Shown: piece by piece, positions 1 to 5,205 of the stretch
Numbering within the stretch: position 1 is the first letter of the stretch
Layout of the letters: each line of letters starts with the position of its first letter
Virus record (IMG/VR): IMGVR_UViG_3300011113_000640
Span: 1-64,000 of that record
Direction: 5' to 3' (one strand)
DNA length: 64,000 bases
The notes under the pieces: model-generated
The model's database searches: none
What the model saw: the letters and a program-made list of their open reading frames with translations, nothing else
What the model was told of the DNA's origin: nothing
Program-made: the position numbers and the translations under genes

Positions 1-919
1 TTCCTAATCCACTTTTTTGAATGCTTTTCAACAAAGGCTTGTAGGTGGCGTGATACAGATATGTATTATCTGCAAGCTCTTGAATTTTCTTGGGCTTTTG
101 CTTGTGTGTTTTGCCATAGTCATACCAGCGATCCACAACATCAAATCCTGGCCGGAAAAATATGGCCATGGGCACACCTTGATCCTGTCTGATCATGCCC
201 ACACGAGTTTTGCCCTGCGGCGCATCTGTTTTTTCTTCTTGACCCACTCGTTGCAACCAAGCATCCGGACGCAGTCTGACCAACCAGGTGTATGGGTGTT
301 GGCTGGCAAAAAGATCGCCACCGCGTAGATAAGTTCGCAAAGGGTAGAACCACAGTGCCGGTCGTCCCGACGGTCTGGGCAGGGCCAAGGGATCATAGCC
401 AGGATCGTCAATGTCGGGTGTTCGACCAAAATGCTGGCGAGCACTGAATCCCAACTTGTCCTGATCTGTGAATCTCACAAAATATTCATCAGGCGAGCCC
501 GGCAAGATGGTTGCCATGTTTTCTATCTCAGTTCTGGCGTCTTGGGCTTCTGTGATCTGGGTTTCCCAAACATTTTGTCCTGGTCTATGTTTCTGCCAAA
601 ATGCCGCACCGGCATCGGTTTGTTGCCCACTGCGCCGGATGCGATAGCCTCGGCTTTTCACGTAGTCATACATGACAGCGGCAATGCCTTGACCTTGGAA
701 TCGTGGATCTACTTCCAGATCCTGTGGATTTAGTATCAGGCCTTGGCCGTCATAGCTCATGGTGAATAAGACATGACCTAGTTCTTTTCCGCCCCGACTG
801 GCTGTCACATATACAGTTTGATTATCAGCGTCATCATCGTCAACATAGTCATCGTCTTTTTGTATTTCAAAAGAGATATCTATGCCTTCAAAATCTCTAA
901 CAAACTCTTGGGCTCTCAT
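1..919 (-). CDS. Multi-domain (polyvalent) protein, truncated by window edge: GNAT acetyltransferase-like domain plus ADP-ribosyltransferase-like domain(s)
   Basis: Not in the ORF track because it runs off the window. Hand translation from ATG 919, which overlaps the TGA of the upstream gene: MRAQEF...LEVDPRFQGQGIAAVMYDY (GNAT motif A)...EYFVRFTDQDKLG...ALWFYPL...YLYHATYKPLLKSIQKSGLG (ART/Tpt1-like H-x-T start). Confidence 0.75.
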   Translation of the reverse strand, partial: MRAQEFVRDFEGIDISFEIQKDDDYVDDDDADNQTVYVTASRGGKELGHVLFTMSYDGQGLILNPQDLEVDPRFQGQGIAAVMYDYVKSRGYRIRRSGQQTDAGAAFWQKHRPGQNVWETQITEAQDARTEIENMATILPGSPDEYFVRFTDQDKLGFSARQHFGRTPDIDDPGYDPLALPRPSGRPALWFYPLRTYLRGGDLFASQHPYTWLVRLRPDAWLQRVGQEEKTDAPQGKTRVGMIRQDQGVPMAIFFRPGFDVVDRWYDYGKTHKQKPKKIQELADNTYLYHATYKPLLKSIQKSGLG

Positions 920-2043
920 AGGCTGTAGGGATCCACTATGACCAAGTGGCCGTTGTTTCTGCGGCCAAGATTTTCCACGGCTGTCAAATCCAAGGGAGCT
1001 TGTCCACCCAGCACCTGTATCATGTCTTCGGTGGCCTGTATGAGTCCAAATATTTCCGCCTCGCTCATTTCTGCGGGCACAGGATTCCGCTGAAGAAACT
1101 GTTCACCCTGTTCACGGTCCACAGCACTCATGAGCTTTTCTATGTAGTCCAGTGTGGCTTCTTCGTTGGCCACATAGTTCACACGTTCCATTTCATACAC
1201 AAAGTAAGTTTCACCGTCTACCGTGAAGTTGCCTGAGTTGTAGATTCTTGGGTAGAAAGGATTCCGTTGATTCTGTTCAAAGAACCGCACATAGCGTCGG
1301 ACTACCTGTTCACGCTCGTCTTCGCCAATACCCAGTACTTTCAATATGGTACCACGTGGACTTTCGAACGCCATTTGATCACGTCCTTCACCGGCCAGTT
1401 CATAGCCACGCTGGAAAAAGTATTGTTGTATTCTATCACTGACTGTGAGTTCGTCGGGATAGTTTACTTCCTTGATTTGTTGAGCTGGCACCCACGCTGA
1501 GATATAATCACGATTCAGCAGATTTTTAGCGGCCCAGGCTCGGTGATTGCCATCTATGATATATCTGTTGGCATCTATCACAATAGGACGTTTGTCAATG
1601 AGATTCAGGCTGACTTCGCCAGCATGGCCAGGGTCTACTGCCATGACACGACCGTAGGGATCACTTTCAGGCTCTTGTTCCACATCGTCATATTCTTCAT
1701 CGGGTATGTTGAGATTCAGCAAGGGTACTTGTTGTAATTGCCACTGAGGATGAGATAATACTGTTTTCTCTAACTTAGGAATCAAAGATTCGTGATGTGT
1801 TTGATTGATGTAGTCTAAAACTTGTTGTGCTGTGGCGGTTTTACTTTCTTTAAGACTGTCAAATCGTTTGACCCAGACAAATCTAGTAGTGTCTGGAATC
1901 CACTTGACTCCCATGTGGCTCTTTGTGTCTGGATTGGTATTGATCAAGAAATCGCCGTCTTGATGCTTCAATATCTGTACTATTTGGCCAGTCTTTTCGA
2001 TCTTGGCCATGACTCTAGTAGAGGTAAATTCTTCGGCTCTCAT
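916..2043 (-). CDS. Multi-domain protein: ParB/Srx-like domain plus protein-kinase-like domain
   Basis: Start reset to MRAEEF (ATG 2043, 6 nt after TAAATA). IIDGNHRAWAA is a ParB/Srx motif. GEGRDQMAF..ILKV..YEMERV..DL..EN..LVIVDP fits kinase-fold motifs. Confidence 0.7.
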   Translation of the reverse strand: MRAEEFTSTRVMAKIEKTGQIVQILKHQDGDFLINTNPDTKSHMGVKWIPDTTRFVWVKRFDSLKESKTATAQQVLDYINQTHHESLIPKLEKTVLSHPQWQLQQVPLLNLNIPDEEYDDVEQEPESDPYGRVMAVDPGHAGEVSLNLIDKRPIVIDANRYIIDGNHRAWAAKNLLNRDYISAWVPAQQIKEVNYPDELTVSDRIQQYFFQRGYELAGEGRDQMAFESPRGTILKVLGIGEDEREQVVRRYVRFFEQNQRNPFYPRIYNSGNFTVDGETYFVYEMERVNYVANEEATLDYIEKLMSAVDREQGEQFLQRNPVPAEMSEAEIFGLIQATEDMIQVLGGQAPLDLTAVENLGRRNNGHLVIVDPYSL

Positions 2044-2047
2044 AAAC

Positions 2048-2452
2048 TTATTTACGCGGCCTGCCGGCAGTAACTCTCTGTATGAGCTCGGCTGCATGCT
2101 CTAGGTTATTGTATTTTAATCTACAGAATGTGGCACTGACTATGCCTTTTGCGTAGGCAGTGCCCAATCCTTGTGCTATTTCGTTGAGTGCTCGAGCCGC
2201 TTTAAATCCATTTGCGTTTCTGGGAATGAATTCTGAATAGCGTTCAAATGTCATGGTCCTGCGTGTAATGTCTTGGGCATTGGCAGAACTGGCCTGGAAG
2301 TTGTCACACTGCTGACGATACTCGCCGGCCATGACTCGGATCTCAGTGATCTGCAGGTACTCGTTGGCGTCATAGGGTGCCATCAAGTAGGCATCCAACA
2401 AGGCACAACTGCTCAGCAACACACAGGTCAGGGCTAGAACAATACGTTTCAT
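2048..2452 (-). CDS. Hypothetical lipoprotein
   Basis: Signal peptide with lipobox LLSSC. Confidence 0.7.
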   Translation of the reverse strand: MKRIVLALTCVLLSSCALLDAYLMAPYDANEYLQITEIRVMAGEYRQQCDNFQASSANAQDITRRTMTFERYSEFIPRNANGFKAARALNEIAQGLGTAYAKGIVSATFCRLKYNNLEHAAELIQRVTAGRPRK

Positions 2453-2559
2453 GGTCGTTCCTTGTCAGGCCAGAATATCACGGCCGCGGCCACTGACACT
2501 GCTATCATCACCACAGTCCAGCCCAGCACTTCCAACGCATAGAACATAAAATCAAGCAT
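2449..2559 (-). CDS. 36-aa single-TM membrane peptide
   Basis: Hand translation [36 protein letters not shown]. Coupled by TGATG and ATGA overlaps to both neighbours. Confidence 0.6.
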   Translation of the reverse strand: MLDFMFYALEVLGWTVVMIAVSVAAAVIFWPDKERP

Positions 2560-3854
2560 CAGTGAAACTGTTCCTCTTCAGTGCTGCCCTTGAGTGCCTG
2601 TGTTGACGCTGTGGCTTCTATGGTGGTGGTCACACGGTCAAAATAGCTGGTTCCTACTTCTCTTTGGTGTTTGACTGCTTCAAAACCTCGCGCACCATCG
2701 GCAAATTCTTTTTGCTGTAGGTCCACAAATGCCGACATGCCATTCCTAGCATAGCCATGAGCCAGATCAAACATGCCGTGATTAAGAGCATGAAAGCCAG
2801 CGAGTGTAATGAATTGAAACTTGTAACCCATAGCTCCAAGTTCACGTTGGAAAACGCTGATTGTTGTATCATCTAAATTCTTCTTCCAGTTAAAAGATGG
2901 CGAGCAGTTGTAGGCCAACATCTTGTTAGGGAATTTGTCATGAATTGCATCGGCAAATTTCTTAGCAAAATCCAGATCTGGCGTGCCTGTCTCGCACCAG
3001 ATCAAATCTGCGTAAGGTGCATAGGCCAGGCCACGACTCACGGCCTGCTCAAAGCCGTTGCGTGTTTCATAGAAACCTTCCACTGTGCGCTCACCGGTCA
3101 GGAAAGGTCGGTCGTTTTCGTCCACGTCACTGGTGACCAATGCGGCTGCTTCGGCATCTGTGCGTGCCAATAATACTGTGGGCACACCCAGCACATCGGC
3201 AGCTAGTCGTGCAGCATTGAGTTTGTTGACAGCTTCGCGGGTGGGAATCAAGACCTTGCCGCCCATGTGACCGCACTTCTTGGCACTGGCCAACTGATCT
3301 TCAAAATGCACACCAGCTGCACCGGCTTCGATCATGGCCTTCATGAGTTCGTAGGCATTTAATACACCACCAAAGCCCGACTCGGCGTCGGCCACTATGG
3401 GCTGGAAAAAGTCCACATCTCCAGAACCTTCCATCCACTGGATCTGATCGGCACGTGCAAATGTGTTGTTGATTTTACGTACCATTTCAGGCACTGAATT
3501 CACGGCGTATAAACTTTGATCAGGATACATTTGTCCTGACGTGTTGGCATCAGCTGCCACTTGCCAACCACTTAGATAAATTCCTTTGAGTCCAGCCTTG
3601 ACCTGTTGCAATGCCTGCATGCCTGTTAGTGCGCCTAGGGTGTTAACATAATCTTCTTCCAACAAGCTCATCCATAGTTTGTTGGCACCACGTTCGGCCA
3701 AGCTGTATTCCACAGGATTGGATCCTTGCAAGTCCACTACCTGTTCGGCGGTGTAGTTGCGTTTGATGTGGTCCCAGCGTGGGTTGCTTTCCCATTCTTT
3801 TCTAATGTGTGTTGCTCGTGCTTTTTTGTTCAACGACATTTTGCTTCCTTTCAA
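2559..3854 (-). CDS. aceA: Isocitrate lyase
   Basis: Full-length 431 aa with [22 protein letters not shown], catalytic [25 protein letters not shown] and HQREVG. Confidence 0.97.
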
Positions 3855-3860
3855 CGGTTA

Positions 3861-4472
3861 TTATTTGCTGATGCTTTCGAATATCGTTTTCTGTTCACGA
3901 TACCATTCCTGCCAGGCCTTTAGTTTTTCTGCGTTTTCGTGGCAGGCTCCGTAGTTTTCGATGACTCGGTCGAGGAGACGACTGGCTTCAATGGCACTGG
4001 GGGTTCCATCAGTTGCGGTGGCACGCTGGGGAACTTGATTGAGACTGGCACTGTCGTGCAAGCTGACAGTGCTACGAGGCAAACTGCACTGAGCATCCAA
4101 CTGCCGACCCGCTGTGTCACGGACGATTTCTCTTGTGATGTATACATTTTCTTTGACCACCTTTACTTTTTCAATTATCTTGGTTTCAATCACAGTGTTG
4201 ACCTGCTGTGACTTCTCTTCTGCGATTCGGACTCGTTGTTTCATTTCTGCTATCTGTTCTCTGTAGCTGATGCCACCCGAGAAATAAGCGGCAATGACTA
4301 AAGCCAACACACCCATTAATTCTGCGGGCAAACGATACTGACCTATGAGTGGTATCCATGACACCAGCTTGCTGGCCACATACAGGATCACACCTGCCCC
4401 AAACAACAGATAGGTCAGCCAGACAAATATGCTGTCAGGTATCAGTTGCAGGAGCCATTGTATCTGCCACAT
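3861..4472 (-). CDS. Rz-like inner-membrane spanin
   Basis: N-terminal TM segments followed by a coiled coil. Lies directly after the endolysin and contains a nested lipoprotein ORF. Confidence 0.75.
   Translation of the reverse strand: MWQIQWLLQLIPDSIFVWLTYLLFGAGVILYVASKLVSWIPLIGQYRLPAELMGVLALVIAAYFSGGISYREQIAEMKQRVRIAEEKSQQVNTVIETKIIEKVKVVKENVYITREIVRDTAGRQLDAQCSLPRSTVSLHDSASLNQVPQRATATDGTPSAIEASRLLDRVIENYGACHENAEKLKAWQEWYREQKTIFESISK
3920..4096 (-). CDS. Rz1-like outer-membrane spanin lipoprotein, nested in Rz
   Basis: MLSAVCLVALSAC lipobox and Pro-rich mature part (KFPSVPPQLMEPPVPLKP), in an alternate frame inside Rz. Confidence 0.75.
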   Translation of the reverse strand: MLSAVCLVALSACTTVPVSIKFPSVPPQLMEPPVPLKPVVSSTESSKTTEPATKTQKN

Positions 4473-5098
4473 CAGTGACCGCCAAATACATGTAGGGCAT
4501 GAGCATAGTGTTTCATCCTATCCTCGAGTCCAATGGTGCCGCCGTTGATTCTTTTTGTCATGGTCAGGATGTCATTGTTGTCAGCATATTGATTCAAGTT
4601 GTTGGTCTCCCAGAACCAGCAGGCACTTTGTACTGCACCTTCAAAGGTTTCCAAGTAAGCACTGGTTTCTTCCACTGGTGTTTCTATTGAATCAGCAAAG
4701 TTTGAGTAGTTGCTCTTGCCTGTGAGCTGGATCAAGCCACGACCGCAGTAACGGAAACCATCGCCGCTCTCTTCAGGACCATTGCCCATTCTGTTGGCAT
4801 AGATCCTGTTGGCTATGGCTTCGGCCTTGTTGGGCAAACCAGCATACTGTTCAGCTAGGGCATCTGTGGGAAAATACTTGGGAAATATCTTTCTTAGACT
4901 TGCGGCACGATAATTGAGATTTTCTTTGAGGAACACAAATCCGCCTGACTCATGGGCGCATTGTGCCAAAAAAGCAGCCACACGCTGTGGAGTGTCAATG
5001 CTGTAGTCAGGCAATAATTTGTTTAGGGCACTGCACCACTGATCGATGTAGGGATTTTTAGGTATGATTTGTGCTAGTTGTTCTCTGGTGATTTCCAT
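4472..5098 (-). CDS. Glycoside hydrolase family 19 endolysin
   Basis: AAFLAQCAHESGGF, LKENLNY, YANRMGN, GRGLIQLTGKSNY, TKRINGG. Confidence 0.93.
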   Translation of the reverse strand: MEITREQLAQIIPKNPYIDQWCSALNKLLPDYSIDTPQRVAAFLAQCAHESGGFVFLKENLNYRAASLRKIFPKYFPTDALAEQYAGLPNKAEAIANRIYANRMGNGPEESGDGFRYCGRGLIQLTGKSNYSNFADSIETPVEETSAYLETFEGAVQSACWFWETNNLNQYADNNDILTMTKRINGGTIGLEDRMKHYAHALHVFGGH

Positions 5099-5205
5099 GG
5101 GTATTCCTTGATGATATCCATATTTAGTTTGCCGCAAGTTGATTTTTTATACATTTTACTCCGCAATGATGATTACAAGTATTTTATCCAGTATTGGTTG
5201 CAAAC

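Follow-up and report, generated by a model that had tools for sequence, protein, structure and literature searches.

The internal proteins IPI, IPII and IPIII of bacteriophage T4 are small, basic inhibitor proteins that share a short N-terminal capsid-targeting sequence (CTS) ending in a site for the prohead protease gp21 (Mullaney and Black, 1996; PMC9026906). The first 10 residues of IPIII are enough for packaging; CTS residues 4 and 7 serve targeting and residues 8 and 10 processing, and an Asp at position 10 stops processing but not targeting (PMC9026906). The T4 enzyme Alt is packaged as well, and gp21 cuts it at ITE-6 and LTE-619 (PMC5694885). Many head-internal proteins of phiKZ-like giant phages such as SPN3US are cut after Glu by a gp21-related protease, and the propeptides of SPN3US-type ejection proteins are thought to target them to the prohead (PMC5694885). 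In polyvalent proteins, in turn, one chain unites several effector domains (Iyer, Burroughs, Anand, de Souza and Aravind, 2017; PMC5512222). Here we analyze two adjacent minus-strand genes, geneA and geneB, at the left end of the window, a stretch that comprises the first 64 kb of the linear 320,541-bp IMG/VR virus record IMGVR_UViG_3300011113_000640 (G000; 93% complete by CheckV). Their multi-module products begin with a shared MRAxEF leader and carry [ILV]-x-E motifs between their modules, and we consider it probable that they are packaged into the head, cut by the prohead protease and injected as effectors of a T4-like jumbo phage.

The family to which geneA and geneB belong resembles the T4 internal proteins in its short tag at the N-terminus, which has E-F-[I]-x-E as its core and a gp21 site at its end, in the very diverse cargo behind this conserved tag, in the few tagged genes per genome, in the presence of gp21- and gp23-type genes in the phage, and in the location of tagged genes beside an endolysin gene. 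It differs in that the tag has 9 residues and not 10, starts M-R-A and not M-K-T-Y, and precedes enzymes of 100-900 residues, often multi-module with internal protease-type sites, in place of small basic inhibitors; past the tag there is no sequence similarity. Alt provides the precedent of a head-packed, injected enzyme trimmed at [IL]-T-E at both ends. Alt is an R-S-E ADP-ribosyltransferase (ART) with one catalytic domain and a propeptide of 6 residues, whereas the ART-like module of geneB appears to be of the H-Y-E type and is one cassette among several. With the SPN3US-type ejection proteins our products would have in common a head-internal location and processing after Glu by a gp21-related protease, both only predicted here; those proteins differ in their propeptides of often more than 100 residues, in the motif A/S/G-x-E and in lacking a common short tag or cassettes.

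The likeness to the polyvalent proteins extends to several effector domains per chain, to a repertoire of a kinase without C-terminal subdomain, GNAT, ParB-like and, putatively, H-Y-E-type ART domains, to extensive domain shuffling, nearby stand-alone cassettes and predicted delivery with the DNA. In contrast, MPTase, MuF, SNF2/helicase or other hallmark domains were not found in the window products, for which we propose targeting by a T4-like tag and, at junctions of a fixed grammar, processing by the prohead protease. The Pfam models Kinase-PolyVal and ART-PolyVal gave no match to the window proteins; the ART-PolyVal cut-off was reached in one relative only (P0031, 31.7 bits), in a different region. 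The tag logic and the polyvalent repertoire are already known, and what we describe is a variant in which a T4-like tag and prohead-protease-type junctions are combined with modular enzyme cargo. Our literature search found no work in which polyvalent or modular enzyme cargo is linked to a capsid-targeting sequence.

Leader and prohead protease

The shared leader had been noted in the original prediction, which also proposed a genome-wide count; this count returned four open reading frames (ORFs) starting with MRxxEF, arranged as two adjacent pairs (919/2043 and 151306/151701). In a set of 33 related IMG/VR loci (372 kb), the search pattern M-[RK]-x-x-[ED]-F was found at 94 starts on the gene strand, often in tandem arrays, and at none on the other strand or in the reversed sequence. 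Among the 80 unique starts, positions that the pattern leaves free are strongly biased as well (Ala3, 78%; [ILV] at position 7, 86%; Glu9, 75%). Conservation of these starts ends at residue 9 while synonymous codons vary, and this combination argues for selection on the peptide. A degenerate 27-nucleotide pattern for MRAQEF[ILVFM]xE matched at least 120 IMG/VR contigs exactly, with fewer than one expected, and 120 further IMG/VR loci contained 283 leader ORFs, versus 2 in the reversed sequence ([ILV]7, 88%; Glu9, 83%). The consensus M-R-A-x-E-F-[ILV]-x-E stands before hundreds of unrelated cargo proteins of uncultured freshwater phages, with two to five strict matches per genome. Among the matches listed, 93 of 120 geneB-type homologues begin with the tag, as do 98 of 148 geneA-type homologues, 22 more of which begin with a variant such as M-K-I-N-E-I-I-V-E.

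T4 ipII and ipIII begin MKTYQEFIAE (read from NC_000866), and the Met, a basic residue and E-F-[I]-x-E are common to this start and to the leader consensus. Judged by sequence, this likeness is a stronger argument for capsid targeting than any contained in the original prediction. The leaders of the two window genes are themselves atypical, with T-S-T (geneA) and V-R-D (geneB) at positions 7-9 where the family has its gp21 triplet; the first canonical sites in their products are L-K-E at residues 64-66 of geneA and V-W-E at 117-119 or I-T-E at 122-124 of geneB. Both tags would probably target without being cut off at this point. As the geneA tag lacks a cleavage triplet, it probably stays on the small domain that follows it (N1), and as the geneB tag ends in Asp, targeting but no cutting would be expected, just as in T4. 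The second tagged pair of G000 (150914-151306 and 151303-151701, minus strand) consists of paralogues of 130 and 132 residues beside fibre-like genes; their leaders, MRAREFIRE and MRAREFVAE, are canonical, and these two proteins look more like classical internal proteins.

Comparable N-termini were also seen elsewhere. The hypothetical T4 gene 61.1 (NC_000866 18966-19130, minus strand; locus L043) begins MKTFKEFIKE, a near-perfect CTS. An ORF for 73 residues (G000 193044-193265, minus strand), located between portal and acidic head-module genes, begins M-I-L-N-E-I-Y-E, which resembles the variant leaders M-K-I-N-E-I-I-V-E of distant homologues. Tagged proteins of 60-69 residues in the related loci (L009:11213, L010:10216, L013:9228 and similar) continue after the leader with T-T-V-S-G-G-I-A-T-V, which mimics the mature capsid start of G000, S-T-V-S-G-N-I-A-T-L, and then with a basic tail; one possible role is that of a core or capsid-binding peptide.

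The protease on which the cleavage claim of the original prediction depends is encoded in the genome. A gp21-type prohead protease gene (G000 191429-192067, minus strand; Peptidase_S77, PF03420, 92.2 bits at 191567-192022) and a gp23-type major capsid protein gene (PF07068, 325.7 bits; G000 189123-190133) lie in a head module alongside genes for the portal and a coiled-coil scaffold protein. The closest capsid proteins, 62-66% identical, are those of the Rak2/PA5oct/GAP32/CBB jumbo phage group, and in the capsid N-termini of this clade L-x-E is retained directly ahead of the conserved start of the mature protein, which is what a gp21-like specificity would lead one to expect. Of five jumbo contigs that bear the leader, four encode a gp21-type protease; the fifth contig is 76% complete. 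By its genes, the carrier of geneA and geneB is an uncultured freshwater T4-like jumbo phage. DNA near-identical to the geneA/geneB region was found in lake and other freshwater metagenomes from 11 studies, and the transcript search returned one marine metatranscriptome only, which matched 7% of the sampled words.

Module borders and identities

Pieces corresponding to residues 1-66, 67-192 and 193-375 of the geneA product, and to residues ~10-124, 125-281 and 282 onward of the geneB product, are seen in relatives on their own or in reshuffled chains. The four junction motifs SLKE, QIKE, QITE and KIQE are found at the places that the original prediction had given for them (Table 1), and there they do separate modules that are conserved across contexts. 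In the geneB product all three [ILVMF]-x-E sites lie at or beside module junctions. When a module stands alone, the leader directly precedes it; when it is fused, [ILV]-x-E precedes it, with differing partners and tripeptides. Counting [ILVMF]-x-E directly upstream of a module, against a background of 20% in random 16-residue windows, we found the site in 41 of 41 internal contexts of the kinase-like module, in all 15 of the unassigned geneB module, in 25 of 25 unique LYHAT contexts of the ART-like module and in 36 of 49 of the ParB-like module; the sequences counted are related to one another, and the numbers do not stand for independent events. The junction tripeptides are numerous and varied, and not a single internal copy of the whole leader was present in 21,755 residues, so that the junctions are not simple fusion scars. 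AlphaFold confidence is lowest at residues 1-10, 61-70 and 191-200 of the geneA product and at residues 103-115 and 266-291 of a geneB homologue. On this comparative evidence the I/L-x-E motifs are true module borders, conserved across many contexts.

These numbers also bear on the trivial explanation that the MRAxEF starts and the junction motifs are due to chance or annotation artefacts. The motifs are short indeed, and [ILV]-x-E occupies 1.45% of positions in leader-family proteins. Such an origin is nevertheless extremely improbable, given 94 versus 0 and 283 versus 2 starts in the comparisons with reversed sequence, the at least 120 contigs with the exact degenerate pattern, and junction counts that far exceed the 20% background; the reversed-sequence and background controls already refute it.

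Within the ParB-like module the motif is avoided: its 71 homologues (alignment A3) contain 5 [ILV]-x-E, versus 117 expected from composition, and [ILV]-x-D is enriched 1.7-fold. This avoidance is relevant to a more serious alternative, in which the products are whole multi-domain polyvalent proteins that are targeted by the tag and injected intact, [ILV]-x-E being a linker or recombination preference. The domain repertoire (C-lobe-less kinase, GNAT, ART, ParB) matches that of polyvalent proteins, some of which are delivered unprocessed (Iyer et al., 2017); both window leaders lack the cleavage triplet, and 13 of the 49 internal ParB contexts lack a canonical site. Yet the junction motif equals the known specificity of the protease type that the genome encodes, it is retained through many tripeptides and upstream partners, it sits in predicted disordered linkers, and the ParB module avoids it internally. 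We therefore regard packaging of uncut proteins as unlikely and favor cleavage at the junctions.

Gain and loss of modules can be followed in nature. A syntenic relative of 337 kb with the same neighbors carries geneA without the ParB module and geneB without its third module. Lake and freshwater (Logan) contigs from four runs, aligned to the window, showed a joint from 1470 to 1870/1871 that skips the ParB module, 1470 being the edge of the Glu192 codon; a joint from 1470 to 2036, where 340 other bases replace N1 and ParB and the first leader codons are retained; a joint from 542-564 to 899/900 that skips the GNAT domain, so that the leader meets the next module; and loose ends at 102, where the third geneB module is absent. 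These contigs are short and stem from related phages, and single joints could be assembly chimeras or errors. The same module architectures also occur on long IMG/VR contigs and as database proteins.

The AlphaFold model of the geneA product has a mean predicted local distance difference test (pLDDT) score of 87.9. Its N1 strands lie within residues 11-58, and pLDDT falls at 61-70; N1 is N-terminal in all of its 13 homologues and is joined directly to the kinase module in L006, L007 and L034. For the second module, 53 of 71 family members match phrog_620 and 32 of 71 match phrog_1033 (best E value 8e-7), D-G-x-H-R is invariant across the module alignment, and stand-alone copies stand directly behind the leader, all of which supports a ParB/Srx-like identity. 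The third module shows a bilobal kinase fold with Gly-rich loop, beta-3 Lys, catalytic Asp/Asn and Mg-binding Asp but lacks most of the C-lobe; kinase entries filled the match list when the whole geneA model was used for a structure search. The corresponding list for the whole geneB-homologue model was filled by GNAT, an assignment also reached by a Pfam match just above threshold, clear fold matches and the acetyl-CoA-binding motif region. The ParB-like and GNAT domains named in the original prediction are supported, as is a kinase-like one in a largely C-lobe-less form.

The ART-like domain of that prediction, which probably referred to geneB residues ~125-281, is not supported there. This beta-rich module is modeled confidently in a homologue (pLDDT 80-96), conserves YFVR..GFSA..WFYP and occurs in stand-alone copies behind the leader, but it has no assignable fold; scans of all members found no match in Pfam or PHROG, and the PDB gave none either. 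A reading of this module as an R-S-E ART was rejected: Arg and Ser motifs are conserved, but an invariant Glu is missing, and the lead from language-model comparison reached only 0.90. An ART-like signal comes instead from the third module, 25 residues of which lie in the window. LYHAT, GVVYLA and TLEYH are conserved in its 26 homologues, weak Pfam matches (E 0.02-0.2) point to the ART-clan families Tpt1/KptA and RES, and its language-model neighbors are Arr, PARP and Tox-ART-HYD1 at 0.94, with an AlphaFold pLDDT of 35-53; its identity as an H-Y-E ADP-ribosyltransferase-like module is thus weakly supported. PDB profile searches with the ParB, kinase, unassigned and ART-like modules returned nothing meaningful, and in the window proteins no Pfam family (E up to 5) was listed for the kinase, the ParB or the unassigned module.

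Another recurrent module of the family is very basic and spans ~55 residues, starting N-F-A-D-G and containing G-K-S-R-P-G-R-V-K-R and H-W-C-A-N-M-K. It is the last module of many tagged proteins (C-termini of L010:6959, L014:1495, L009:7478 and L020:6004), is also found alone behind the leader (L013:6576), is always preceded by V-x-E and is possibly DNA-binding.

Table 1. Features of geneA and geneB in the window; x in motifs is any residue.
Feature	Position	Strand	Remarks
geneA coding sequence	916..2043	-	375 residues + stop; ATG at 2043, stop at 916-918; product begins MRAEEF; leader, small beta domain, ParB-like and kinase-like modules
geneA leader MRAEEFTST	2017..2043	-	MRAxEF head; positions 7-9 without [ILV]-x-E
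N1 (geneA residues 10-66)	1846..2016	-	small five-stranded beta domain; ends at L-K-E
SLKE junction (geneA residues 63-66)	1846..1854 (LKE)	-
ParB/Srx-like module (geneA residues 67-192)	1468..1845	-	D-G-x-H-R; ends at I-K-E
QIKE junction (geneA residues 189-192)	1468..1476 (IKE)	-
Protein-kinase-like module (geneA residues 193-375)	919..1467	-	ends a few residues past the DFG-equivalent Asp
ATGA overlap, geneA stop/geneB start	916..919	-	read from sequence; also in relatives
geneB coding sequence	2..919	-	306 residues to contig edge, 3' end missing; begins MRAQEF
geneB leader MRAQEFVRD	893..919	-	Asp replaces the cleavage Glu of the family
GNAT (geneB residues 10-124)	548..892	-	ends at V-W-E and I-T-E
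QITE junction (geneB residues 121-124)	548..556 (ITE)	-
Beta-rich module (geneB residues 125-281)	77..547	-	YFVR..GFSA..WFYP conserved; ends at I-Q-E
KIQE junction (geneB residues 278-281)	77..85 (IQE)	-
H-Y-E ART-like module, putative (geneB residue 282 onward)	2..76	-	first 25 residues; LYHAT; remainder past contig end
TAAATA	2049..2054	-	5 nucleotides 5' of geneA ATG; overlaps stop of upstream gene

Genomic context and start signals

Homologues of geneA are present in 30 IMG/VR loci. The overlap of geneA and geneB by ATGA and their starts MRAEEF and MRAQEF, as originally described, were borne out by the ORFs and their translations, and this arrangement fits translational coupling of the two genes. 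Extension of the truncated geneB, which the original prediction had suggested, succeeded in part: a full-length homologue of 382 residues (P0003) that is 80% identical is available, and the missing end of geneB itself is absent from the opposite contig end, where no terminal repeat was found either.

The TAAATA ahead of geneA had been interpreted as a late motif. It is present, and its letters belong to the end of the upstream lipoprotein gene (2048-2452): the last base of one Arg codon, the Lys codon after it and part of the stop codon TAA. It is absent at the equivalent place in the relatives L002, L007 and L018, and as a late promoter it is putative. TAAATA is followed by an ATG after 3-8 nucleotides at 33 ORFs of at least 60 residues genome-wide, compared with a median of ~7 for permuted hexamers. 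Among these ORFs are the portal gene, a fibre-like gene and two further genes of the head region, and the examples in the window are at 2043, 5219, 14326, 33785, 41851 and 44904. TAAATA is a real start-associated signal, perhaps a promoter of mRNAs that are leaderless or have a very short leader. Neither upstream of geneA nor upstream of the head genes was the complete T4 late promoter TATAAATA found.

Upstream of geneA and on the same strand, the lipoprotein gene is joined by two others, one at 3861-4472 for a membrane/coiled-coil protein and one at 4472-5137 of the GH19 endolysin type; the membrane/coiled-coil protein and the lipoprotein look spanin-like. Between these lysis-type genes and the tagged genes lies a full-length isocitrate lyase gene (2559-3854, minus strand; Pfam ICL, E 6e-106), which occupies the same place in the 337-kb relative L034 and probably serves the glyoxylate shunt as an auxiliary metabolic gene.

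Proposed model and its implications

What our data show directly is the leader family with its resemblance to the T4 CTS, the genes for protease and capsid protein, the module borders with their motif, three module folds and the population-level insertions and deletions of modules. These findings have to be set against the possibility that geneA and geneB encode unpackaged cytoplasmic enzymes whose N-terminus has a different purpose: it could set the context for translation initiation, serve as a degron, direct the protein to a different compartment or partner, or offer a recombination handle by which cassettes are exchanged. The neighbors of both genes are metabolic and lysis-type, not head genes; T4 ipII and ipIII, however, are likewise found away from the head genes, and the T4 endolysin gene e directly adjoins them. 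Many starts of the family have no Shine-Dalgarno sequence and overlap the prior stop, so that initiation could depend on the first codons, and the Arg2 codon is AGA in 62 of the 80 unique starts. Conservation nevertheless acts at the amino acid level, with free synonymous change at Ala3, Glu5, Phe6, position 7 and Glu9; furthermore, the tag has a protease site at its end, is similar to the T4 CTS in E-F-I-x-E and co-occurs with a gp21-type protease. A purely cytoplasmic role consequently appears rather improbable to us.

Several observations weigh against packaging and processing of the geneA and geneB products. Both window leaders are atypical, and the T4 CTS is one residue longer than the leader and has in Tyr4 a targeting residue without counterpart in it. 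In the cultured relatives PA5oct, Vibrio phage 2.275.O, Phosso and GAP32, the leader pattern was matched no more often than by chance, and a tblastn search of both products against 50,697 phage records, which covers the cultured phages, returned no match. The two genes lie ~190 kb from the head module. The lipoprotein gene is separated from geneA by 4 nucleotides with no visible Shine-Dalgarno sequence, an arrangement that gives no clue to the timing of expression. Avoidance of [ILV]-x-E is strong in the ParB module only, the observed/expected ratio being 0.78 for the kinase, 0.49 for the unassigned and 1.0 for the third geneB module. To these we add the reservations made above on the relatedness of the junction counts, the ParB contexts lacking a canonical site and the short metagenome contigs.

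With these points taken into account, head packaging followed by cleavage and injection is still the explanation that we favor. Targeting, cleavage, injection and the targets of the enzymes are steps that we infer, and they can be combined in the following model. In the role of a capsid-targeting sequence, the N-terminal tag would guide the protein to the prohead scaffolding core. The gp21-type protease, cutting after Glu in [ILV]-x-E, would remove those tags that end in such a site, and it would also cut exposed [ILV]-x-E linkers between modules. Cuts are predicted after E66 and E192 in the geneA product and after E119/E124 and E281 in the geneB product. geneA would thereby yield the small beta domain together with the tag (1-66), an NTPase or nuclease of ParB/Srx-like type (67-192) and a kinase-like enzyme without C-lobe (193-375), and geneB a tag-retaining GNAT (1-119 or 1-124), the beta-rich module (125-281) and a putative H-Y-E ART-like module (282 onward). 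Injected together with the DNA, the separate enzymes would act on proteins or nucleic acids of the host and modify them, in the service of takeover or anti-defence. A common short border grammar would allow modules to be readily gained, lost and swapped between phages.

A broader proposal, to which we would give a little less than an even chance, is that a large clade of uncultured freshwater T4-like jumbo phages uses a portable two-part grammar, in which a 9-residue capsid-targeting tag and an [ILV]-x-E junction read by the prohead protease load shuffled enzyme cassettes as polyproteins that are freed as separate injected effectors. In this tentative proposal, the cassettes would comprise kinase, ParB-like, GNAT, ART-like, HAD, NUDIX and nucleotidyltransferase modules, together with many unknown ones. 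The grammar would then be, with the same reserve, a phage counterpart of polymorphic toxin cassette systems in which capsid maturation serves as the processing step.

The tagged modular system is widespread in uncultured freshwater jumbo phages and testable with ordinary phage tools. If our interpretation is correct, the T4 internal-protein principle, so far represented by a few small inhibitors and Alt, would become a rule that can be read from sequence, and virion cargo could be predicted simply from the tag plus the junction motif. The same interpretation would point to a polyprotein strategy that occurs naturally in a tailed phage, and the tag might serve as an orthogonal, second capsid-targeting sequence with which to load foreign proteins into T4-like heads. 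Hundreds of uncharacterized proteins of environmental jumbo phages would be marked as injected first-strike effectors, and they would form a catalogue of candidate anti-defence and host-takeover enzymes that includes a minimal protein kinase.

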